DNA of 64,000 bases from Orbicella franksi (lineage: Eukaryota). This document shows, one piece after another, positions 8,220-63,089 of the stretch (the first letter of the stretch is position 1; each line of letters begins with the position of its first letter). The notes under the pieces were generated by a model. That model ran no database searches and was not told the origin of the DNA. It saw nothing but the letters and a program-made list of their open reading frames with translations. A program made the translations under genes and the position numbers. The stretch spans positions 23,002,001 to 23,066,000 of the forward strand of contig OZ116708.1 in assembly GCA_964199315.1 (NCBI GenBank), in the 5' to 3' direction.

Positions 8220-8440
8220 TAATTAGAGGTGATATAAGCATGCCCTGAGTAGCCCTTAATTCATATTATGCAATAGTTTTTGATCCACTCTAGGTAAGGT
8301 AAGCGTATATTTCCGTTTCTTATGTCGCGTTTGCAAACATTTAATTTAAACTGTCCTTCAAACATGAAGGTAAGTAAGTAATCAGAGGTGATATAAAGAT
8401 TCCTTGAGTAGCCCTTAATTTCATATTATGCAATAGTTAT
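8220..8440. repeat. Direct repeat (about 60 bp x2), probably within an old transposon
   Basis: agaggtgatataag...tgagtagcccttaatt(t)catattatgcaatagtt occurs at about 8225 and 8384. Confidence 0.7.
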
Positions 8441-9459
8441 TATCTGGAGTATTTATGTAAGAAACCAAACTTTCCTACATGTAAACAATGCAACTAACGG
8501 GCTGATGCATCTTACACAAAAACAACTTTTTTAAATATTCATTTTGAGCTATTTCGATTTTGAGATCTAACTAGCAAAATGAAGAGGGGAATGTCAGGGG
8601 CCCACACCGCCATCTTCAGTACTAAGGCTGAGAGTCAACCTTTTCGTACCTTCTTTTTCTTTATTTTTAGAAATTAATCTGCTTCTGTCTCCCGGGAGTT
8701 TTGTGCTCTAACTTAAAAACGGTCAAACACAATACAACGGTTCAGTTCACGGCCTTCTGAGAATGTAGCCCATAGGGCCTAGCAACAAGTTCTCAGCAGT
8801 TCATTTTATTGTCGCTATTTTGTTTCTGCCCATTGTGAGTTCCATATAGCATTGTCAGTTTTTATATAAACTGAAGAAAGTCAAACTTTATATTTCAAGC
8901 AAGGAACTCAACAGAAGGGGCTTCACGGTATAGTGTTTCAATTAGTTCTTAAGAGAACCAATCATTGGTGAACACGTTGCTATCATTTTCGTGACAGTGT
9001 ATGTTACTATAGCAACAGTATGTTGGTGTCCAAAACCAATTGTTGGAGTTGAATCTATTTTTATGTAAGCACATTCCTTTGTTCCAATAAAAAAATTTAC
9101 ATGAATCTTGCCACGTGAGGGAAAACGCTCTATAAACTCGAGAGATACTTTATGACCTGCGAAAGCTTTCCCAGAGGGGAAACAAAGTGGTAATGCTAAA
9201 TTGAAAGGTGTAGTAGCCACTGTAAGTTATGTTTTGCAGGATTTCTGCTAACATGATCATCGATTTACATGGATATGTGTATACACGAAACCGTTTTTAT
9301 TTCAGTTGAATTAGTAAATAAATTAGTGGTGTTACAACAGTACACTGATTGGCCTTGAGTCTTCACAACAGCCAGGTCATTATTCTTTTATTGTTTATCA
9401 GTCGACATTTTTGTCTGTTAAATCTGGATCGGTTCGTGTGTTTTCTTGGGGACCTCTGG

Positions 9460-9941
9460 GTCAAGTCATCTACTGATATCTTGAAAATGTTTCGCGTTGT
9501 ACCCTTTATCATCTGCTCGGACTCCAAGGTAAAGTTCCTCCACGAGAACTGAGCTTTACATCCTCGCAATGGCCCAGTTCATTCTGTTTAATTGTTTCTC
9601 TACCTTATTGTTTGTCTGTTTACTCTGGGTCGAATTACACATTGAATCTTTTATGTTGCTGTATTCTTTATCATCCACTGGGGCGCCACGACAAAGTTTC
9701 TCCTCGAGAACTGAGCACTACATCCTCATAATGGCCCAGTTCATTCTGTTTCAGCGTAGATGGCCATCGACGAATGGTAACACTACTTGTTTCGCTGTTT
9801 ACTTTGGAACGGGTCCTTCGAGAACGTTTTACAGAGGTTCTTGAACATTTCTGGTGCCGCATCCTTCAACATCTGCTGGGATACCCAACAGATGAAAAGA
9901 CTCGTCCTCGAGTACTTTAAAAGATCGGATCATTGACGTAT
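9460..9941 (-). pseudogene. Decayed continuation of the gene B cytoplasmic tail in the presumed 3' UTR
   Basis: Beyond the stop the sequence reads DPIF/KVLED...QEPL*NVLEGPVPK (TAA at 9831-9829), then an in-frame 162-bp duplication with stops at 9720-9718 and 9558-9556 before SVLEE/SVLVEE. This matches the intact DPVYNVLEGP of gene C. Confidence 0.6.
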
Positions 9942-12900: not shown

Positions 12901-15900
12901 CCGTGATCGTGGCATTTTTCTAAACATTTTCAGTCTCGCGTGTAAAAACGTTTTTTTAACCAATCTCACTCGGGACCGTACTAAGAGAACATGGGACCTT
13001 ATTGCCAAGATTTATCAAGACCGCTGGGGTAGATATTCTAACAGTACAGCCCTCGCGCTCAGTGAATAAGATATATTCATCTTTCTTGAAGTCAAAGTTC
13101 ACATACTTTAGATAGCCGCGTCGATAAGCAAAGAAGCCAATGATGATGACAACAGCTAATATGGAAGCGGTAAGTCCAGCGATGAGGCCCTGGGACGAGC
13201 TTGAATCATCTGCACCCTGCTCACGGCCAGGACGGGTGGGAGCCTGGAGACGAAAGAGGAAAGATGCATAAATTACTACCAAGACTGAGGTACCTGAATA
13301 ATGTATTGAGAAATGATATTCCTCTCTTTTCCAGTCAATTCAAAGCGGCTAATTGACAGCCCAGCAATAAGTGAAAATTTTGGTGACATTTCATTAAAGT
13401 TAGCTCAGAACGTTTTTGATACTTGCTGTTAAATCAAACACTTCATTCATCAGTCTCTAAGTAGGAGTCAAGTTAGAGAGTTTAGTATATTGATATGGGC
13501 CTTTTCTGATATTTGACTAATTCAAAGCTACTTTTGGAAATAGATACGCGTGATTTAGTTCATTGAGAGTGCGGCAAAATAAAGAGATCTTATAAATGTC
13601 AAATGCAGATAAACTAAATTCTAAATAAACATTGTTTTCTGTGGTTTAATTTAGTGTTAAATAAATTTCAGAGAGGCCCATGACTGGTTCGTATATTCTG
13701 CAAAACGTTTAGCCAGCGGTTACAGCTGATAATGCAATAGACGTACTATCAGTCGAACGTCGGAGACCGTCGGTTGAACATCGTTGACTGTCGGTCGAAC
13801 ATCGGAGACTGTTGGTCGAATATCAAATCCGTTCGGCATTGCGGTGTAGACCACAGGCATGGAAAGTGAGGCACTGCGTACAAGTTTCAAATCAATTACC
13901 GTGTTTCCAGCCATGCCTGTTCCTTTGGATGGAAATAATTTCAAATTTCTTTCTCCTGGCTTTGTTGTAACTTTGGGTGGTAAAGTAGGTGCTAAACCTA
14001 AAATAAAAATATCAATGCCATCGATATATATCTAATCAGCGTAAAATGCAATATACCTTTTCACGATTTCTGACGCCATCTTGCTTGGGGCCAAACATGA
14101 CAAAAATCAAGGTAAATGTATTAGGAAAATGGAGAATCTAAGGTCTAAGAACTCACGGAAAATTCGAGTTCTGAAGTATTCGCGGGAAAATTAAAGACAT
14201 TTGTATGAAAAATTAAAAGTCCAATTCTTCCCTTACAGCAAACCTTTGTTCTTCAAATTTGGTTAAAAAATCTTCTGCTGGGTATCTTTTCCTTGTATAT
14301 GTAATTCATAAAATACTCAGAACATAAGTCAATAGTATTGGGCATCGAACTTTTTTTACTTTTTCCATACATTTACTGTAATTTTTGCTTTGTTTGCCCC
14401 CCAGGCAAGATAGTGTCAGAAACCGTGAAAAGGCCTATCACTCAATCTTTTTGCTTCGGGGGACGGGGGGGAGCGGGGGGGGCTCTATGCAAAAGGAACG
14501 AGGATAGTCGTTATCTCGTGTGGTTTTACACGTTCAAGACGAAACGCTATATCTAAGGGCTTTTACCTTTAAAATATCTTTTAAAGCTTTCAAGGTGATA
14601 GTTTATATCGATTAGGCATCTACAAATGTCTTCAAAGATACATAAGCATCGGATGACGTCTTAGATGTCTTCAAGGTCACTAAAGCTCCGAACGTTAATT
14701 TGTCTGTTTGTGTCGGGGTGATTTCTCCTAGGGTTCAAATAGAGCTTTAGTAACGCCCGGATTGTTCTCCTTTAGACGTTTACTAGAAACTCATTAAGTG
14801 AGCCTCTCAGCTTAAAACTACTTTAATACGGTCACCGCCGTTAAAAAGAGCAAAGATTAGTGGACTATAAGTGTTCGGATTAACAGGGCTTAGTACTCGA
14901 ACTTACATTTGATATTTCCCACATATTTAAACAGCATCCAACGGTTAACAGGACCATTGCAAACCACTCCGAGCTTGATGATTCGTCCCTCTAACAATTT
15001 GGTGTTTGTTGCGCCGCCGTTAACCTGCAACGTGTAACAAGAGAGGAAGGTTGTCGCTATGCAAACCCTGAAGATTATGCAAATGACATTAGAAAAGAAT
15101 TTACACGTGTTCTACCCTATCACCCTACTCGACCCAACGAGTAAGTCGGGCTTGATCTAGTTGTCTGCGGCCCCATACCCCACTAGGGGCAATAAGGATT
15201 GATAATGATGATGATGATGATGATCTAGCTGTCTGTTTCTATTTTCGCCTGGTCTTGGACTTGGTCCAGGCCAGAGTGATTCCCCATAACTTATTACCAT
15301 GTCGTGAATAACAATGCCCAGGGCAGAAAATTGCATTATGCTGGAATCAGGCCTCGTACCTCTCGGATCGAATGAAAACGACAATTTACAATGAGGTTAT
15401 GATTAAAGTTTGCTCAAATCCTAGGGTCGAAGGAAGCATACGTTACATTGGTCTCGGTGCTTAACTATACTATGGCATGGAACGACAAGGAATATAGTGT
15501 CATTTATGGGATCAGAGAAATCCATTGCAGGTTATCCCCCTCCCGGCCCTCCCCATCCCCCACGGACTTTTGTAAGGTTACCTTAACTATTCCAGTAAAA
15601 ACCCACGTGTAAGAAACTATAATTTATTTTTGAAGTTCTTGGTTTTTGTATTTTGGGGTAGTTATTGGCAAGTTAGGCTAAGTAGGTTGTTATTTAGGCT
15701 CTCAATTTCTATGAAGGACATATAGTTGTTGATTACTAGAAAAAGAAATAAACTTGGGTTTGGTCCTTGAATATGCAATATTTATTCACAACTGTATTAT
15801 GTATTTTCTTGTAATATAAATTTGCAATCTCAAAGTCACACTCCCTGGTTAAAATGTTTATCATAATTTAACTGTAACCCACATATAAGAAACTGCTTGA

Positions 15901-53581: not shown

Positions 53582-54460
53582 CGAGTCGTTCGCGATTAAT
53601 TATGGAAAACTTACCCTAAATCAGTTCATTCTATAGGTAACACTTGAATATTTTGGACACAAATATCAACAGTATCCAGGACATTTTTATACAAGTTTAG
53701 CTTCGCTGATAATGCCGGAAAGAAAAGGAATTAATCAAATACAGAAATTGTACTAAGTTAGTAATAAATGCAATTATATTTTCCCCGAGGAAAGAATTTT
53801 TATATATTTAATGAAGCCCCTAAACTATGTTTGTTGTTCTTCACGTTATTGTAGTCACTGTTTTGGTATACAAAGAAAACCAAAGAATTTCAAGCTTAAA
53901 CTATGTAAGGAATTTCAAGTCATTAATTTAGTGTGGGGATTCAAAATTGTCCGGGGACTGGGAATTGTTTACTTCAGTCACAACTGAACGCCACATTGTT
54001 TATATAGATTGTGCATTGCAAAGATTGATTGACTGTTACAAGTATAATGTTTTCTAAGATTAAGGTTCTTACAGTTCTTGTATATGACAGTTCAAAAGAA
54101 CTGTCACATACAATTTTATTACAATTATAGCTCGATATATTTAAGTCCAAAAATTACGTACAGCTTACAGCTAAAATTCTCAAGGAAATTCTACATTCAA
54201 AATTCAGCTCTTCATAGAGTGCTTGAAATTCACACGCTAGATTTCCAAGGAAAATAAACCACATTACTGAAATATAGAAAGAGTGGATAAAAACACAAAC
54301 GTGACGTCATTTCCGGATCTCGAAGCCTTACCATGACGTCATTTCCGACCACCAAATTAAAGCTTTTTTTTAAAGCAAAGCAGTATACATTCACTCGCTC
54401 CTCTAAGGGAGCAGATAATTTTAATTTCAAAAAAAGTAACAAAGATAAAACAGAGTGACT

Positions 54461-57400
54461 TTATTTTCTTGTGAACGCCCTTCGAGGAGTTTCAGTAGTT
54501 GTCTTTCTGAGTGGCTGATAAACTGACCGTGTTGGTTTCTGAAGGGGCTGGTAACCACTCAGTTCTGTTACGCCCTCCATGGGCGTACAACCGTTCGTCG
54601 GAGCCGGTGTGCCCTCAAGGGCCTGGTACCCAGCATTAGGGCCCTCCAAGGAGTGGTATAAAGGGCCGTTTGTTTTGGGATCCTCGTGTGGTCTGCTTTT
54701 TTCATCTTTTAAAGGTAGGTCAGTTGTGTAACTATAACAATACTCATCGTTGTTGTCTAAGGTATCACTACTGCCGGCAGCGTCTGTGAATCTCTTAAGA
54801 TTCGCGTCTTCGTAAACAGCTTCCTTTTTCCGCCCTTTTGAAGGCGAACCAATCGCTGCGCGCTCCTCTTTCAACACAGGCTCGTCATAATCGGAATCAG
54901 ATCGGAAGCGCTCGGACGACTGCTCGTTCTGACCGGACAATGCTCGGTCCATAATCGTGCCCATTCCGTAGGGTCCTTCCAACACCTGATATAAAGGCGT
55001 ATCAGGCGGTCGAGAAATGGTGTCCGTGACGTCTGAAATTTTACGAGAATCTACCAGAAAATAAACGAGGAAAGATTTAGACTCACTTGCACGACAAGAA
55101 AGAAACAAAGTGAGGCACAGCAAATACGACAGTGGATTTGCTAGTCTTTGTATTCTCTCGTGGGTCGAGAGGCAGAAAACCTGAGAACAAATGGCAGTGG
55201 GAAAGCTGGAGACAAGAAAACTCCAGTGCCCTCATCTCCAATGCCCTCGCGCTACTTTTTTCCCGCGCTCTTGGCGTTATCGACCATAGCTCATTGCGCC
55301 GTTACCCAGTATCAACCGCATGGCTACGAATTATAAAAGCGTTATTTACCTGTGGTAATAACTTGGTTATTACATCCGTTAATTGCAGCCGCCTCCACAG
55401 AACCCAGAATGGGATTTCTTGAATCTTTTCTTGGTTGGCGCTCTAACCAAATAATCTCTTCCGAGCTAATAGTATCGCTTGGAACTGGGAATAGCGAAAG
55501 AGAGAGAAACTTAAAAGTCTAAGAGCTAATTGAAACGTAAGATAATGGTGGAACATCCTCTGAGATGTCTGTCCCAAGCTTTCCCATTTCTTTACTATCC
55601 TATTCCGTTTTGTTGTGCAATTTCCTCGTTTCGTGTTTTTTTACTCTGGCACGAAGTTATCTGGAAATATCTTTCGTTTTTGACTCATTTTCATCTGCTG
55701 GAGTACTCTTCACTAGTATCCCTTATGAGTCTAGCTATTTTTAATTACCTTCCAAGTTAGTTAAATCCAGTCTGCTTATCAAATCGATGTAAATTAAATG
55801 CTATGAAAATAGAAATTTAACCAAACCACACCTTGAGGCAGAGTTGGCCATTTTTGGTGATTTAAGCTTCCCCTAGAGTTAAAAATAATGTTATTTAAGT
55901 ACAAATTAGTAAATCATTCTTTGCTTCCTTGAAATTTTAGATTGTGGAGGGGTACCAAGGGGGGGTGACAGCCAGTTCGCTAAGGTTCCCCTTTACTTCA
56001 GACCAACATAAACGTATATGATTTTCCACACCCCATTTAGACCCAACATTTTAAATACCGTTGTGGTACGCTGTCGGATAATTTATTTCAGCTTTATAGT
56101 GCAGCAAGCACTAAGATGAATGGTAAGGCAAACCGTTGTTGTACATGTGAGCCCTAAAATATTGTAAGGTTACCTTTTTTGGTTAGGAAAAAGGAATCCT
56201 ACATTAACAGGAACTATCTTTTTTGCTACAAGTCTTACATCTATCCTTAAAGGATACACGTAAGATAAAAGAGAAATGAACTTTAGAAAGCTTTAGTGTC
56301 TTGGAGTCTCGGTCGGCAACCCAGAACAGCTTCAAAGGCTTCAAGTTGTAAATGCTAAAATGAGTTCTGTACAAGCAGGAAAGCGCACCAAAAACAAGAA
56401 CACAAACTTTTGGTTTCTGTCCGCGGTTCATAAACACCTGTGTTAAATCTCCTCTCCACGCACCCACTGAGAAACAAACTTGACAGTTTGACTTCAGTTC
56501 TTGTATTGAGCGTTTAATTTTTGATAAGAGCTCTAGAGAGGACAAAATGTTCAGACTGCTTGTCAACGTATTCAAAGAGTGTCTTTTGAAATGATTTCTT
56601 TTCAGCTCCAGTATTACCTTAGGAATTAGGTGAGTTTGGAGCGAGAAGTAGAAGCAGGCTACACTGTCTGATAAGCGAGGAAGAAGGAAAGAAGTGCCAC
56701 AATTAGTTAAGAATGCGATTAGACAATGTGGTGCTTGTTTCTGATCAGAAGAGGGAACATTTAGTGGCTGCAGGAAATAAACAAAGTTACGGTCACAGAC
56801 TTTGCGCAAACTCATAAATATGAGGGCTAAAATGACTAAAATGCTCTTATTAGACAAGACAAGCTCAACATGTTATTCTCTCAAGTGTACTTGTCATACA
56901 TTTCGGACACCCACCTTAATTGAAGTTTAATTTATGGTACTGGGAAAATGTTTTTCGAATGATCACGTTTATTTTTTTGGTTTGTTTTAATTTGTTTGTT
57001 TGTTTGTTTGTTTTTTAAAAGCTACCTGGAACATTATTCTACACATTATATAAAGTACAATTTTCTTTAATCTTATCAGATCAGCTGATCGTATTAAGAT
57101 AGGGTTCTTTACAGATACAAATTCAGGCATAACCAAAAACAAAAGTTACAAAACAATAATAATTAAAAAAAAAAAAACTTACGAGCGCTTTCTTCTCCAA
57201 AAGCAAAATAACACAACCCCCACGACACAGATAAAAGCAACAACTCCCGCAATTATGGCTGACAACATCAGAACGTTCAGTCTACTTGCCTCTGCCTCAC
57301 TTGAATCAATATCCTGGAAATTGGACCACAAAAATCACTGTACTGCAGACTACTTATCTCGTACTCATACCTCACTCGGTTTGAAGCTGCTTGCATGGCC

Positions 57401-60234
57401 GTGGGAGAACTGTGTTCGAGATTAGCAGGTTACAGTGCGGATAGTAGTACGGTTATAAAAGGAAGGCTTAATCTCGGGCGGTGGGAGAGGGGGCGCAACC
57501 CTGCAACCTCCCCCTAGATCCGCCCTGAAGAGGATATACTGGGGGTGGGGAATGAGGGTGCCTTGGCGAAGGATAATTTCACACGTGGCCATATGGAATC
57601 TTCAAATGGGTGAGAAATGACGCGTTTTTAAAGGGGCTCAGTCACGGTATTTTGAGTTATTTTGGCCACATACAAAATTACCTTTAAATGGTAGGAAACC
57701 TGAAAATAACAGTTTAATAAGATAGAAAAACACCAAAGAGATTATGATAAACCATAAAGGAACAAGGATGGCTAAGGATGGAGAAGATTGACACGGATTA
57801 CAAACGACGAATTTGAAAAATTGAGGCTAAACTTTTCAATATGCGCAAACCGTGACTGAGCTCCTTTAACAGATAGCTATCACCTAAAATCTGCAAATTT
57901 TACTGATAGCTGGGAAAGAGGATGAGATTTTATGTGATTATTGTGAATCGCGGAAAATTAAACTGACGACTGATATTCCAGCACCCCCATCAAAGACCCT
58001 CTGTTATTATTGCATAAATTCAGTAAGGAAACATTTTCCGATGAAAGTTTCCAGCCTGGATTTAAAGAGAATAATTCTTATTTAATTACGCACCTGTCTA
58101 GTTACGTTGTTGGTCCTCTTTGTCGTCTGGGGAATACTAGTTTTTTCTAAAAAAAAAACCAGAAAATTTCAATTCCTTGTCGAAGCTCTCAAAGTTCCGC
58201 ATTGTTGTTGATTATAATTTAACGCGCGCATTAGAAACATGGCGGAAACTTTTTAGCGACTAACTTCATCAAGACATAAACAGTAATTACAAATAATCAC
58301 GAAACATACCTAGCTTTATTGCATTTTCAATTCCAGCGACGATACAATTTGAATGAACATTGACGCATTGACCACGCATACTTTTTTTTCTTAATTCGAT
58401 CTTTTTGGACTTTGCATGGTAAAGGACAACCAGGAAAAATTTCAGAAAATTGCCATATCAACATAATATCAAAAGGAATTACTTTGAATATCTTGTAGAG
58501 ATTGGCTGCATTTCACTAGCGCTGGAAAAGAGTCAACCTTTATCATGCGCAAGAAGAAGGCAACCTGCGCCAAGCGCGTGAAAACATAGAAACTATCTCA
58601 GGGGTGTTATAAGTCGCGAAAGCCAACACTCGTACGATCAGTTACAGCTTAAAGTTCATTAGCTACAGTGAATTATTATAAAACTACTTTTATGGAGTAA
58701 ATACCAAACATACCTTTTGTTCCAGTCGTCGTTTTTCCTTCTTCAGCAGAAGTTGAGTACAAAACGGTCGCAGCCGTTGTCTGACGGGCGGTCGTAGTTG
58801 AATAAAAAATGGTGGCAGCCGTTGTCTGGCACGCAGTCGTTGGCTGGCGCGCAGTCGTTGTCTGGCGCGCAGTCGTCTTTTTTGAAAGTGTCGCAGTTGT
58901 TGGCAATGGTACAGGAGGTGACGAACAGCATTTGCACACACACGTTTTTCGGCAGTTCTTTACCAGATCAGCGGTGGTGGCTGGTCTCCAACAGTTTCCA
59001 AGTTGCATTTGACAATACTGGTCGTTATAAATGTTGACACACGCTGTGAAGAAGTTACAGTCATAACTTTTTAAAAAGAACTACATCGCTGATTGCGCAT
59101 CTTGAAGAAGTCCTCTTCGGCTTATAATTCCTCGACTATTCACAGACTCCCTATTTTCAACGCGAGCGAAAGAAAAAGCAAGCGCGAGCGCGAAGAACAA
59201 GGGGACGGCGTTCAACGATCGAATAAAAATACGAGAAAATAGCGGGCTGTGAAAAGTCCATATAATTCTTCGTTGGTTTTATTCTACCTTGAAAAAAGCT
59301 TAACTAAAGTTGCACTCAGTGCAGGCCGCTGGCCTAAGGGCACTGCCGGACCTTACCCCGTTTCCATGGCATTAAGTGAAAAGGAGCGTGGCTACTCCCC
59401 GGCCGTGCAGAACGGAATGCTAATACATCACAGTTTAGCCTCCATGATTTTGGGAAGTTTCCATCACAGATCGCTGGTTCCAATTTTTTTACCAGAGACA
59501 CTGTGAGATCCAAATGTCTTACAACAGACCGCAGTGACTCCAACGAGGGCTAGAACCCAGACCAATCAATCTGCCGCCGTAGTTAGTAGCACGAACTATA
59601 AAGCCATTGCTATTTCTGTCAGGTTTTTTCGATTTGAAGAAGACTTATTATATATTGTTAACACTCGATACCGCAACAAAGTGTTGCAGACTGGGCCGTG
59701 GGTATAAAACATCAGTGTATAGACTGCAAGTGCGATACACATAAGCATATAGTACAATAGTTCGCAGCTTTGCACAAACCCTCGTGAATGAATCAATTTT
59801 TATAGATGGTCGACGAGAACTAAGGCAATGATTTTCCAGGGAACGTTTTGGGGAGAAGCATACACTTAATAGTGCGTAGCTTTGCACAAACCCTTTGCGA
59901 ATGAATCAAATTTTATAGATGGTCGACGAGAACAAAGGCAATGACTTTCCAGGGAACGTTTTGGGGAGCAAAGCAACTAGCCTTTAAGTTTTCGCTGTAG
60001 AAAGTACGCATGGTCTCCGTATGTTATGAATCAGAAAGCTTATGGAAGTTAATACTGAAATTAAAGCTACAGTAACAACAACAACAACAGGTACAAGAGT
60101 AACTCACTCACCAGGAACTCCCAAACACACTTGACAGCTTTTAGGACAATTTTGAAGCATCCATAATGGATTTCTTGTACACTCGCCCTTGTTTGCCTAA
60201 TCAGAACATTTATTGTGTTTGTCAACACATGCAC
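54461..60234 (-). CDS. Gene E: ShK-domain type I membrane protein with a Tyr-motif (ITAM-like) tail; 5' exon unresolved; in-frame stop in the first ShK exon
   Basis: Exons 60234-60112 (CVDKHNKCSD*ANKGECTRNPLWMLQNCPKSCQVC), 59043-58714 (ShK-like CVNIYNDQYC...NCRKTCVC plus Thr-rich stalk), 58146-58094, 57313-57183 (TM AIIAGVVAFICVVGVVLFCFW then RRKR), probable 55771-55749, 55484-55350, 55050-54461. Junctions are GT-AG and phase-compatible. Confidence 0.75.
57632..57865. mobile_element. TTAA-targeting MITE (Kolobok- or piggyBac-type), gene E intron
   Basis: TTAA|aggggctcagtcacgg ... ccgtgactgagctcct|TTAA. Confidence 0.8.
59767..59970. repeat. 112-bp tandem duplication in a gene E intron
   Basis: gctttgcacaaaccct...ttttatagatggtcgacgagaac...tttccagggaacgttttggg occurs at 59767 and 59879. 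Confidence 0.9.
60112..60234 (-). pseudogene. ShK (ShKT) domain exon carrying a premature TAG
   Basis: Six-Cys ShK pattern C-x6-C-x8-C-x9-C-x3-C-x2-C. The codon at 60199-60197 is TAG, at a position usually Trp in ShK domains. The exon is 123 nt, phase 1-1. Confidence 0.75.
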
Positions 60235-63089
60235 CTGAAAAGCAGTACGTGTTGCAATCTCATATAAGCAACGATCTCTACCCTTGCCCTTAAAGGGCCC
60301 TAGTCAGCAACACCTATGTTTTTGTTTGCGTGCGAAAGTTTGGCTATTATATTTTATTCACAGTATGTCGATCAAAATGAAGGAAATCACTGTGAAACTA
60401 CTTAAGATAATTAAATATACTTTCAGGAACACAACTTGCAGTAAAGCATGAGACTTCGCTTCACCATGCAATGTCAGTAATTTCGATGGGACCGAAAATG
60501 GCGAAGGTTCACTAAGGTCCTTTAACCTATGAATACACGAGGGCACTATGAGCGTGGGGCTTATCCGACCGTAACCAGTCGTGATTTATTTGTTTTACCC
60601 CCTGCCACACCCATCTTGCAAGCACAGTGAACAAACCAAGCCAGTGAATCTGTTTGAGCAACTTTGATGAAGAAACGATAGCATATGAGAGCTCAAGGAA
60701 AGTCCCCAGGGTGGGAGGAAGGCTACAGAAACAACTGAAACGATCGAACCAACAAAACGAAGTGGTCGCATTATAACCCAAATGTCAGTCAACAGCTAGC
60801 CAGGCGCAGCGTGGAGGCCTGGGGCTAAGATTTAACCTCGTTTCCAGGGTCCTCTCTCTATGACCCTGAGAACGGGGTGGATTAAGTTATTCCGTTATTC
60901 CCTGGGAATATGAACTTTGATTTATTTGATTTTCGGGTGAGGGGAGATCGAGATTAAACGGACATCCTGCACGCGTAAATCCAGTCATTACACTCTGGCA
61001 TTCAAGCTTCTCTCGCCCAAAAACACATGAATAGTGACTGCGAAAGAGCCCTTATAGTAAAGATGATAATGTCCCTGATATGTTGTTTTAACAATTGCGC
61101 GCGGAAAATACGCGGGAATAATTATAGCTGGGAAAACTTTTGATCTCAATGAGTATCTATGCCCGAGGCAAAGCATTTAAAATGTACAGAAAAAGTAAGA
61201 ATCTAACTGAAAAGTTGACTGCACGTTTAAAAGAAGAAACAATATTTATTAGTTTTGCGCAATAACTTGAGTTTTACTTTTGTGGCTCATTACCAATCAT
61301 ACAGTTCCTCATTAGAAACGTTTTCCGCGAGAGTTCATCCGTTTTAATATGAATTTTACAAGCTTTTAAATAAGAGTTCTAAATCCATTGAAAATAAAAC
61401 GCATTGGGATAACTTGTACTGTCAAGTCAAGCACAACATTGTACGTATTTGATTACAAAAATTGAGCAATCAAATTTGAAAGTAAACAAATAAAGAAAAT
61501 GAAAGAAATAAAATACCAGCTGTCTTATGGTTGCATGGCAGGCATGTCTTTAAATTAGCTTTCCGGGAAAGCAAAATCTGTTATTATAAAACCAGATCTT
61601 ATTAGCTAACGACGGGTCCCTGAAGCCGGCTGGGGCTAGCAGAAGGTGGGGAGTGAAACGTAATAGGGTAACGCAATGTCTTTATTGAGGAAGCATTGTG
61701 CAAGAATGGTTTAATAAAGGCATTGCAACACGCCACAAAAATGCCAAAATCAGAAAAATAGGACCACATTGAGGGATACAGTGCGTTATAGCAATTTCGC
61801 AGAGAGCACTGCCCGGAACACTGTCATTTAGAAATTGCCATCAATGAAAGCTATAATTACTCAGTGATTACTTAGAGATAAGTAAGTCAATACTCTACGA
61901 GAACACAAGTGTATGTGAAGGGCCTTGAAAGGCTTTCAATATCTTTAACTTCCCTTTTAAAATAGTAAACATACTCACGCATAAGTGTGTCTAACCTGCA
62001 ATGAAGAAGTTGTCTGGGCGTAACACTCCAGCAAAAATGAAGATCAATGTAATCGCGTTGATAATCGTCCGCTTTAAAATCATTTGGATGGTTCAATGTG
62101 ATTTTCTGCCACAACTCACAACTGTCCAAGACCACGGCCAGGACTAAGTCGTTTTCTGTCATCGAATGCTGTGCAAAAATCTAAGAGAGTGGGAATCGAA
62201 CGCCAACTTTAAAACCATTTCCTCACCGTCATACCGCAAAGAATTGAGGCCCAGAAATTACGAAAGATCGGCCAGTCTTTAGATTTGCACCTTTTCCTGT
62301 GACGTTGTCTACAAAGAATTATTTCTCTTTTCTTCTCGAGAAGTAAGCTAAGGCATGTTTAAGGCATGCTGATAAACCCGAACTATTCCTGTCATTTTGC
62401 CCCTCTAAGCCAGCCGAGAATAAAACAAACAGTTTGCTGAGTTTTGCGATCGAAGGTCTTCATTCATCGATCTCGCGGTAGGAAACTTGAAGATGTTGTT
62501 GAGAGACTTTTGCCATGGGTCAGTTTACGTATGTTTCGTTAATAATTATTTTTTCTATTAATAATTATATATTGAAAATGTAAGCTTTTGATTGCGTGCT
62601 ATGTAATATGCAGTTTTACACCTATCGTTGGTTTGCGCGATAAAAAAGGTTTTTCGCTTGTCAATTTGGTCACGTACAAAACATCAAACTCTGGTTGATA
62701 CGGTCAATAGATTTCTACGAAATTTTTCTGTTTCAAAATTAGAACCGGAGGCTATTTATTAATAAAATTAACAATACGTGGTCCACCTCCGCCCCTCCTC
62801 ATTGTTTTGGGAACGTGGCTCCCTTCCCACCCCTCCTTAATCACAAATAACACAGTATTATGTCTTTGTAGGTTTTCTTTCACATAGTTACCTATCTTCC
62901 TTGAGATAAACTACCATGGACAAAGCGAAAATGTCCATTATTCGTCGTTCTTTTCACTTTTAGTTTCGCTTTTTGCACGCTGTAGTTGTATAGCCACTAT
63001 CCCGTCCCACCCCCTGCAGTGGAAGATTCTTGAAATTTTTGCATGAAGCTTTACTTGACGTACCTTCCGGAAAAACAAATCGATTTCTA

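Follow-up and report, generated by a model that had tools for sequence, protein, structure and literature searches.

The stretch of DNA considered here, a window of 64,000 nucleotides from the stony coral Orbicella franksi (assembly GCA_964199315.1, contig OZ116708.1, positions 23,002,001 to 23,066,000), carries on its minus strand a gene, termed E, in the neighborhood of four same-strand genes termed A to D. E is one transcribed gene, because single spliced RNA contigs (1777, 1773, and 1433 nt) join its ShK exons, stalk, transmembrane helix, and tail; the ShK exons and the tail exon thus lie in one transcript, as an earlier, sequence-only reading of the locus had assumed, and not in separate ones. 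The product is a type I membrane protein of 495 residues, composed of a signal peptide, an ShK domain, an ShK-like module, a threonine-rich stalk, one transmembrane helix, and a cytoplasmic tail of 259 residues, 11 of which are tyrosines. In alignments of related proteins, the tyrosines are the best-conserved residues of the tail, and the tail is taken here, with a probability of about one half, to be a phosphotyrosine docking platform whose C-terminus, similar to an immunoreceptor tyrosine-based activation motif (ITAM), would receive a protein with tandem Src homology 2 (SH2) domains.

According to this proposal, engagement of the ectodomain would lead to phosphorylation of nine or ten conserved tail tyrosines, several of which lie in acidic contexts (SDSDYDEP, EAVYED, DEYCYSY), and SH2 proteins would next be recruited to the phosphorylated tyrosines. 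As an ITAM-like double site, the C-terminal YxPL-x7-YxPL would receive a Syk-like or Shark-like kinase or, alternatively, an SHP-type phosphatase. In addition, YDEP, which resembles the pYDEP motif of Nck/Crk-type SH2 domains, would serve adaptors of that type. A narrower version, in which E is a stony-coral-specific ShK receptor whose C-terminal ITAM works by recruiting a Syk-like or Shark-like kinase and of which the reference colony holds a natural null allele, is possible but rather doubtful.

Tyrosine motifs of the tail

Two pairs of YxxL motifs follow the transmembrane helix in the same transcript, and both match the ITAM pattern Yxx[LI]-x6-8-Yxx[LI]. The first, YHSL-x6-YQAL, reads YHSLEGPNAGYQAL at 54658-54617, and the second, YQPL-x7-YQPL, reads YQPLQKPTRSVYQPL at 54553-54509; translation of the minus strand reproduces both pairs at coordinates identical to those given in the sequence-only reading. 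A further motif, PLYQVLEGP (54997-54971, minus strand), has a second copy in the form PLYHSLEGP at 54664-54638. When the 259-residue cytoplasmic domain was shuffled 100,000 times, at least one match to the ITAM pattern arose in 1.4% of shuffles and at least two in 0.016%, and the five Yxx[LI] motifs present among the 11 tyrosines were reached in 0.3%. The motif pairs of the E tail are therefore real and not explained by composition.

Relatives of the tail were collected by an exhaustive phmmer search, which gave 16 representatives, including a spurious one (P0011, 2848 residues) that proved to be a bacterial cadherin-like/FG-GAP repeat protein matching by composition. Word-index searches, made with a Pocillopora fragment and with the full-length alignment, gave stony-coral proteins only. 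The named members come from Orbicella faveolata, Oculina patagonica, Pocillopora verrucosa, P. damicornis, Desmophyllum pertusum, Montipora foliosa, and M. capricornis; in public annotations, the Pocillopora members are called mucin-5AC-like and that of D. pertusum a ShKT domain-containing protein. An alignment of 12 tails, which are 35-74% identical to that of the window, has six invariant columns, namely Y, Y, Y, Y, L, and Y. With tyrosine accounting for 11 of 190 tail residues, five tyrosines in six invariant columns correspond to a hypergeometric p of 1.4e-6.

The conserved motifs of the tail are SPLYxVLEGPN, SDSDYDEP, EAxYE, DEYCYSY, GPxYxx[LVI]ExPN-x-GYQA[LP], and, at the C-terminus, [DE]xxxYxPLxKxT-x3-YxPLKK. 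Within SDSDYDEP, the tyrosine of YDEPV (54889-54875, minus strand) is found in all 10 non-gap sequences, and the triple-tyrosine motif EYCYSY (54745-54728, minus strand) is invariant or nearly invariant. One further tyrosine position varies between the RNA runs: at 54588, within NG[C/Y]TPM, a C/T polymorphism gives, on the gene strand, TGT (Cys) in the window and in runs X1 and X3 and TAT (Tyr) in X6 and X9, tyrosine being the state in most orthologues.

Both tyrosines of the C-terminal YxPL pair are present in 12 of 12 tails and also in full-length Montipora proteins. Leucine at +3 of the first motif is invariant, proline at +2 and leucine at +3 are otherwise nearly so, and the spacing is x7, with x9 in two sequences. 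The YHSL-x6-YQAL pair, by comparison, has ITAM spacing in Orbicella and close relatives only; its second half is YQAP or YRAP in 6 of 12 tails (P0005, P0008, P0010, P0012, P0013, and P0016) and likewise in full-length Oculina, Pocillopora, and Montipora proteins. Since the first pair is not conserved in relatives while the C-terminal pair is, the latter is the family-level ITAM-like element, and its pattern across orthologues indicates maintenance by selection. Thus, of the two ITAM-spaced pairs described earlier, one is conserved throughout the family and the other is not.

Proteins that could occupy such a double site are encoded in the genome. A six-frame search for SH2 domains gave several tandem-SH2 loci, the nature of which was settled by examination of the loci and by tblastn; a Pfam scan for kinases, in which 136 of 1774 candidates were scored, did not have these loci among those scored. 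The locus at ~9.311-9.324 Mb of C14 is Syk/ZAP70-like: it contains two complete SH2 exons and, after them, exons for a tyrosine kinase, and ankyrin repeats were not seen. That at ~10.513-10.529 Mb of C7 holds an SH2 domain, ankyrin repeats, a second SH2 domain, and a kinase, and is Shark-like. The arginine of FLxR is kept in all four SH2 domains of the two loci. Syk and Shark kinases are known in cnidarians, in which ITAM-bearing receptors have also been documented (PMC9546547, PMC5978004). Another tandem-SH2 locus, on C3 (~11.035-11.040 Mb), may be SHP-like, as the 20 kb examined there contain no kinase exon. Apart from the tandem loci, three intron-poor open reading frames (ORFs) that combine SH2 and tyrosine kinase lie within 140 kb of C12 (24622457-24629539 and 24758309-24759409), one of them being a single ORF of 395 residues; retrocopying or tandem duplication of Src/Fes-like kinases may have produced them.

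When the two Syk-like SH2 domains were docked with the last 42 residues of E without phosphate, the interaction prediction score from aligned errors (ipSAE) was 0.46, against 0.01 for the best control, which is weak by the rating of the tool. The partner had a predicted local distance difference test (pLDDT) value of 50 or higher, and agreement between the runs extended to at least 66% of contacts. In the calibration, to which this job is unlike, scores of 0.60 or lower were given to 5 of 78 solved complexes and to all 4 mismatches that passed. Hence the model gives a small nudge, and a weak one, toward engagement of the E C-terminus by Syk-like SH2 domains.

A number of results weigh against the proposed docking platform. 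The docking score, besides being weak and phosphate-free, may reflect memory of solved SH2-ITAM complexes, and the first of the two motif pairs is not conserved as an ITAM, as described above. The acidic residue of the strict ITAM (D/E-x-x-Y) is displaced, the conserved D/E of the tail alignment standing at -4 (TELSGY, IDPSGY) rather than at -3, which bears out a reservation already made in the sequence-only reading. The second cysteine module of the ectodomain gave no Pfam match at E<=1, a probability of 7% in hhalign against the first ShK domain with only the NCxK[ST]C end aligned, and chance matches only in a profile search of the PDB; an AlphaFold2 model of the two-ShK ectodomain, built on a 3-sequence alignment, is unusable (pLDDT 37.6). 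The assembly itself has an in-frame TAG at codon 42 (60199-60197, minus strand) in place of a conserved ShK tryptophan. Finally, the motifs are ambiguous, because all YxxL of the tail also fit YxxPhi sorting signals and S-x-Y-x-x-L fits the immunoreceptor tyrosine-based inhibition motif (ITIM).

The first of these ambiguities leads to the main rival explanation, that YxPL and GYxxL are sorting signals (YxxPhi for adaptor protein complexes, GYxxPhi for lysosomes) steering endocytosis or lysosomal delivery of a mucin-like glycoprotein. Not only does every YxxL of the tail fit YxxPhi, but glycine precedes two of the motifs (SGYQPL, AGYQAL), as in LAMP-type signals. The ectodomain is also mucin-like: its stalk of ~90 residues is 47% Thr/Ser/Pro, has sub-threshold matches to Endomucin and Podoplanin, and is probably O-glycosylated. 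However, the tail, at 259 residues and with some ten conserved tyrosines, many of which lie in acidic contexts typical of kinase substrates (SDSDYDEP, DEYCYSY), exceeds the needs of sorting, and the strict x7 spacing of the C-terminal pair is conserved, so that we consider this explanation unlikely.

The second ambiguity concerns the sign of the signal. SVYQPL and SGYQPL match the ITIM pattern [SILV]-x-Y-x-x-[ILV], in keeping with the earlier remark that SxYQPL is also compatible with an ITIM, and in orthologues the residue two positions before the last tyrosine is recurrently Ser, Thr, or Leu. Together with further tandem-SH2 loci that lack a nearby kinase match, such as that on C3, these matches would suit a C-terminus that recruits an SHP-type tandem-SH2 phosphatase, in which case E would be an inhibitory or dual-function receptor. 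The two tyrosines are, however, 11 residues apart, which is the spacing of ITAMs, whereas ITIM pairs are usually 20-30 residues apart, and in the first motif position -2 is variable, being N, S, T, or A. An ITIM-like function is accordingly judged improbable, and the ITAM-like docking site remains our preferred reading of the C-terminus.

Transcript, ectodomain, and the stop at codon 42

The E gene consists of 8 exons on the minus strand (62083-54464) that form a closed frame of 495 codons, with phases 0-1, 1-1, 1-1, 1-0, 0-2, 2-1, 1-1, and 1-end and with canonical GT-AG splice sites throughout. RNA contigs of four runs from three studies were placed on 54380-60379, and the tail exon was detected in 11 RNA runs. 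The contig segments cover 60237-60112, 59043-58714, 58146-58094, 57313-57183, 55872-55832, 55484-55350, and 55050 to past 54380, and each joint is CT..AC on the plus strand, that is, GT-AG on the strand of the gene. The phases proposed in the sequence-only reading (1-1 for the exon at 59043, 1-0 for the Thr-rich exon, and 0-2 for the transmembrane exon) all hold. The range it gave, 54509-59043, contains the motifs and exons assigned to it but is incomplete, as exons 1 and 2 lie upstream of 59043 and exons 6 and 7 had been missed.

Exon 1 (62083-61996), which bears the start codon and signal peptide and ends in phase 1, was placed by tblastn with the N-terminus of the orthologue P0021 (83% identity over 30 residues); it has a GT donor, and its frame closes with that of exon 2. 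The RNA contigs extend ~72 nt 5' of exon 2 (60234-60112, phase 1-1), which is spliced to 59043 in contigs of all four runs. Exon 3 (59043-58714, phase 1-1) encodes the ShK-like cysteine-rich module (59041-58925) and then the Thr/Pro/Ala-rich mucin-like stalk, which continues in the short Thr-rich exon 4 (58146-58094, phase 1-0; RNA joints 58146>58714 and 57313>58094). Exon 5 (57313-57183, phase 0-2) holds, by RNA contigs and translation, the transmembrane helix (57280-57197) followed by an RRKRS stop-transfer sequence. The cytoplasmic part begins with the 41-nt juxtamembrane exon 6 (55872-55832, phase 2-1), found in contigs of X1, X3, and X9 and carrying GSLNxQK, which is conserved in orthologues. 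It continues with exon 7 (55484-55350, 135 nt, phase 1-1), in which EEIIWLERQ (55461-55435) is conserved and which is joined to the next exon (55050>55350) in all four runs. Exon 8 (55050-54464), delimited by RNA contigs, frame, and family alignment, encodes the tyrosine-rich tail and ends with the stop codon at 54466-54464.

A few departures from this model were seen in the RNA. One X6 contig (55350-55793) continues from exon 7, without splicing, into the intron that separates it from exon 6, as a result of intron retention or as pre-mRNA. Alternative splicing at 58716, suggested by a joint 58149>58717 in X6 and X9, was rejected, a one-base difference at the end of exon 3 (AAG versus TAG, Lys to Ile) being sufficient to explain it. 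Intron 4 contains at 57628-57869 an element of ~242 bp with terminal inverted repeats, similar to a miniature inverted-repeat transposable element, for which a first look at the genome gave 2946 candidates; among the 40 copies scored, identity is 96-98%. At this element, RNA contig depth reaches 10,000-57,000, with many loose ends at 57628 and 57869, and an Rfam search of 54000-62500, the element included, gave no match. In intron 2, depth is ~240 at 59180-59379, compared with 5-15 on exons, with loose ends at 59208; this stretch may be another repeat or a small transcript.

The module of exon 2 is, by its sequence, a canonical ShK (ShKT) domain. Its six cysteines (60229-60125) follow the pattern C-x6-C-x8-C-x10-C-x3-C-x2-C, and the Pfam ShK family (PF01549) matches the orthologues P0021 and P0019 at 4e-9, with 37 bits against a cut-off of 20.9; the ShK-domain membrane protein of the earlier proposal is thereby sustained. 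In the copy of the window, the domain is broken by the TAG at the conserved tryptophan. The second module is highly conserved; its cysteine spacing is ShK-like, so that it may be a divergent ShK domain. Its exon is the only cysteine-rich one in the range given earlier, so that an ectodomain built of phase 1-1 ShK exons was correct with respect to phase, but the exon on which it was based has no Pfam ShK match. For the tail, neither a Pfam search (no match) nor an ESM Atlas feature search (best score 0.86, an unnamed cluster) provided a lead.

Orthologues have tryptophan at the position of codon 42, and every contig of the four RNA runs reads TGG there, with G on the gene strand at 60198; the transcripts of other colonies are intact. 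A at 60198 in the DNA and G in all four RNA runs would be expected if the TAG were recoded to UGG by A-to-I editing, which would leave the reference copy functional. The same contigs, however, also differ from the window by A>C, G>A, and T>C elsewhere and therefore represent other genotypes, not edited copies. Moreover, an 85-nt probe around the TAG is complete only in two runs, both from a single study from which the assembly probably derives, while 1 of the 4 indexed words of the probe is present in other runs, DNA-type and RNA, under the same species label, a weak result with four words only. Editing is for these reasons very improbable, and the distribution of words fits a rare nonsense allele; the TAG is probably such an allele of the sequenced colony, and the haplotype of the assembly is probably null.

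The public O. faveolata model (LOC110068563, P0020) begins at a methionine inside the first ShK domain because exon 2 is interrupted in that assembly by a scaffold break, a single N. The idea that it begins after the TAG since that assembly shares the stop was rejected, as the single-N break is uninformative on the TAG. In the same assembly (GCA_002042975.1, locus L010), exons 6-8 occur twice (8319-9581 and 14372-15780), flanking a gap of 3750 N. The duplicate and the single-N break are assembly artefacts, which explain why the public model is both truncated and over-long. The E gene model presented here corrects it. In public annotation, the protein is named uncharacterized or mucin-like.

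Comparison with known systems

The nearest known counterparts are the Alr proteins of the Hydractinia allorecognition complex, single-pass proteins several of which have Yxx[IL]-x6-9-Yxx[LI] ITAMs or ITIMs in divergent tails, encoded in a genome that also has homologues of Syk, Shark, and SHP (PMC9546547). E and Alr are alike as cnidarian single-pass membrane proteins with ITAM/ITIM-type tails. However, Alr proteins have V-set/I-set Ig-like and Fn3-like ectodomains and form a large polymorphic hydrozoan family, whereas E has ShK modules on a mucin stalk, is single-copy, is confined to stony corals as far as searched, and has no sequence similarity to Alr. In Pfam searches of the E orthologues, no Ig match was obtained, only ShK and sub-threshold mucin-type ones.

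The chains CD3 gamma, delta, and epsilon, FcR gamma, and DAP12, as well as Draper, resemble E as type I membrane proteins with YxxL-x7-YxxL close to the C-terminus, and in CD3 gamma and delta the ITAM likewise has YQPL as its first half-site. Drosophila Draper signals via Shark, of which a Shark-like counterpart is present in this coral genome. Vertebrate ITAM chains and Draper nevertheless have no homology to E, whose tail is much longer, has about eight further conserved tyrosines, and carries its acidic residue at -4. With regard to many tyrosines in SH2-type contexts (YDEP, YE[DE]x, YxxL), multi-tyrosine transmembrane docking proteins such as LAT/PAG-type adaptors and nephrin with its YDxV-Nck sites may be functional analogues of the tail, with no homology.

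On the extracellular side, ShKT proteins of PF01549 such as the membrane-anchored MMP23, astacins, and CRISPs share with E a six-cysteine, extracellular, non-toxin module on a symmetric phase 1-1 exon, but they are proteases or secreted proteins. The Lys-Tyr dyad by which the ShK toxin blocks channels is not evident in E. In the literature searched, no protein combining a ShKT pair, a mucin stalk, and a signaling-type tail was found, and searches for the locus name and for ShKT together with ITAM in corals gave no description of the E family. ITAM/ITIM single-pass receptors in a cnidarian, as in Hydractinia Alr, and the frequency of ShKT modules in cnidarian modular proteins are already known. 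What is new is the joining of two ShK-type modules and a mucin stalk to a strongly constrained, tyrosine-rich tail that has an invariant ITAM-like end, in a single-copy gene found, as far as searched, in stony corals only.

Few candidate ITAM receptors are available in cnidarians outside Hydractinia Alr, despite the presence of Syk, Shark, and downstream CBM components. If its C-terminal ITAM works as in the narrower version above, E would be one of the so far unknown ITAM receptors that have been postulated to lie upstream in the Syk/CARD-CC/Bcl10/paracaspase pathway of cnidarians. It is a compact candidate, being single-copy, conserved in stony corals, transcribed in several reef-coral data sets, and constrained in its motifs, and its small ShK ectodomain should express easily. 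In addition, should the nonsense allele be confirmed, colonies that have an intact copy could be compared with those that lack one, and the natural null allele could be used to study function.

Orthologues and neighboring genes

The full-length Montipora, Pocillopora, and Oculina proteins and the transcript-assembly orthologue P0021 have the whole architecture in common, and signal peptide, ShK domain, ShK-like module, Thr-rich stalk, transmembrane helix, and tail occur in the same order in Orbicella, Oculina, Pocillopora, Desmophyllum, and Montipora. By this comparison, the E gene is old within stony corals; the listed species span both major scleractinian clades, so that the gene would predate their split. 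The neighborhood is the same in Oculina, in which a divergent upstream gene with a Sha_B_N domain is followed by E and then, downstream, by the orthologue of D (L012, 23169 onward).

In the sequence-only reading, E had been regarded as an exon-shuffled member of the A-D cluster, made by swapping ectodomains on a common tail. In its full form, this account has ShK exons added to a B/C-type tail within the cluster, producing an activating counterpart of an ITIM-bearing D. E does lie on the same strand and in the same neighborhood as A-D, its parts have a similar order (stalk, transmembrane helix, tyrosine-rich tail), its transmembrane exon has phase 0-2 as in B, and the nine-residue P[LV]YxVLEGP is shared with C. 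The tail, however, is single-copy: a hidden Markov model of the E-tail family, run with filters off on the six-frame translation of the window, found E only and nothing else at E<=10, and in the whole genome it found this locus only. In BLASTP, the sole likeness between the tails of E and C (PVYNVLEGP in C) is the nine-residue motif, 7 of 9 identical at a pairwise E of 0.02, and against B no meaningful similarity was obtained. Hence the similarity of the E tail to the tails of B and C, for which homology tests had been proposed as a check, comes down to this motif in C, with no profile match to C and none to B.

Because the tail is single-copy, has no match in B, and shares only nine residues with C, the idea of a shared tail with swapped ectodomains is unsupported. 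The complete E architecture, furthermore, is already present in Montipora, E already stands beside D in Oculina, and no protein joining an E-type tail to a different ectodomain was found among the phmmer and word-index matches. Origin by swapping within the cluster is thus largely refuted and has become highly unlikely; by sequence comparison, E is an old orthologous neighbor of the A-D family and not a recently shuffled member with a common tail. The phase 1-1 ShK exons do not date any shuffling event, since that phase is expected for any metazoan extracellular module.

What E shares with A-D is therefore the strand, the order of parts, the 0-2 phase of the transmembrane exon (B), and the nine-residue motif (C), while ectodomain and tail are both unrelated; the part order noted earlier holds to this extent, and homology to A-D does not. 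The A and D ectodomains have exons that match one another as well as further loci of the window, with no match within 54-62 kb. The last exon of gene D (44584-44291, minus strand) encodes a tail with LRYQNL, which fits the ITIM pattern.

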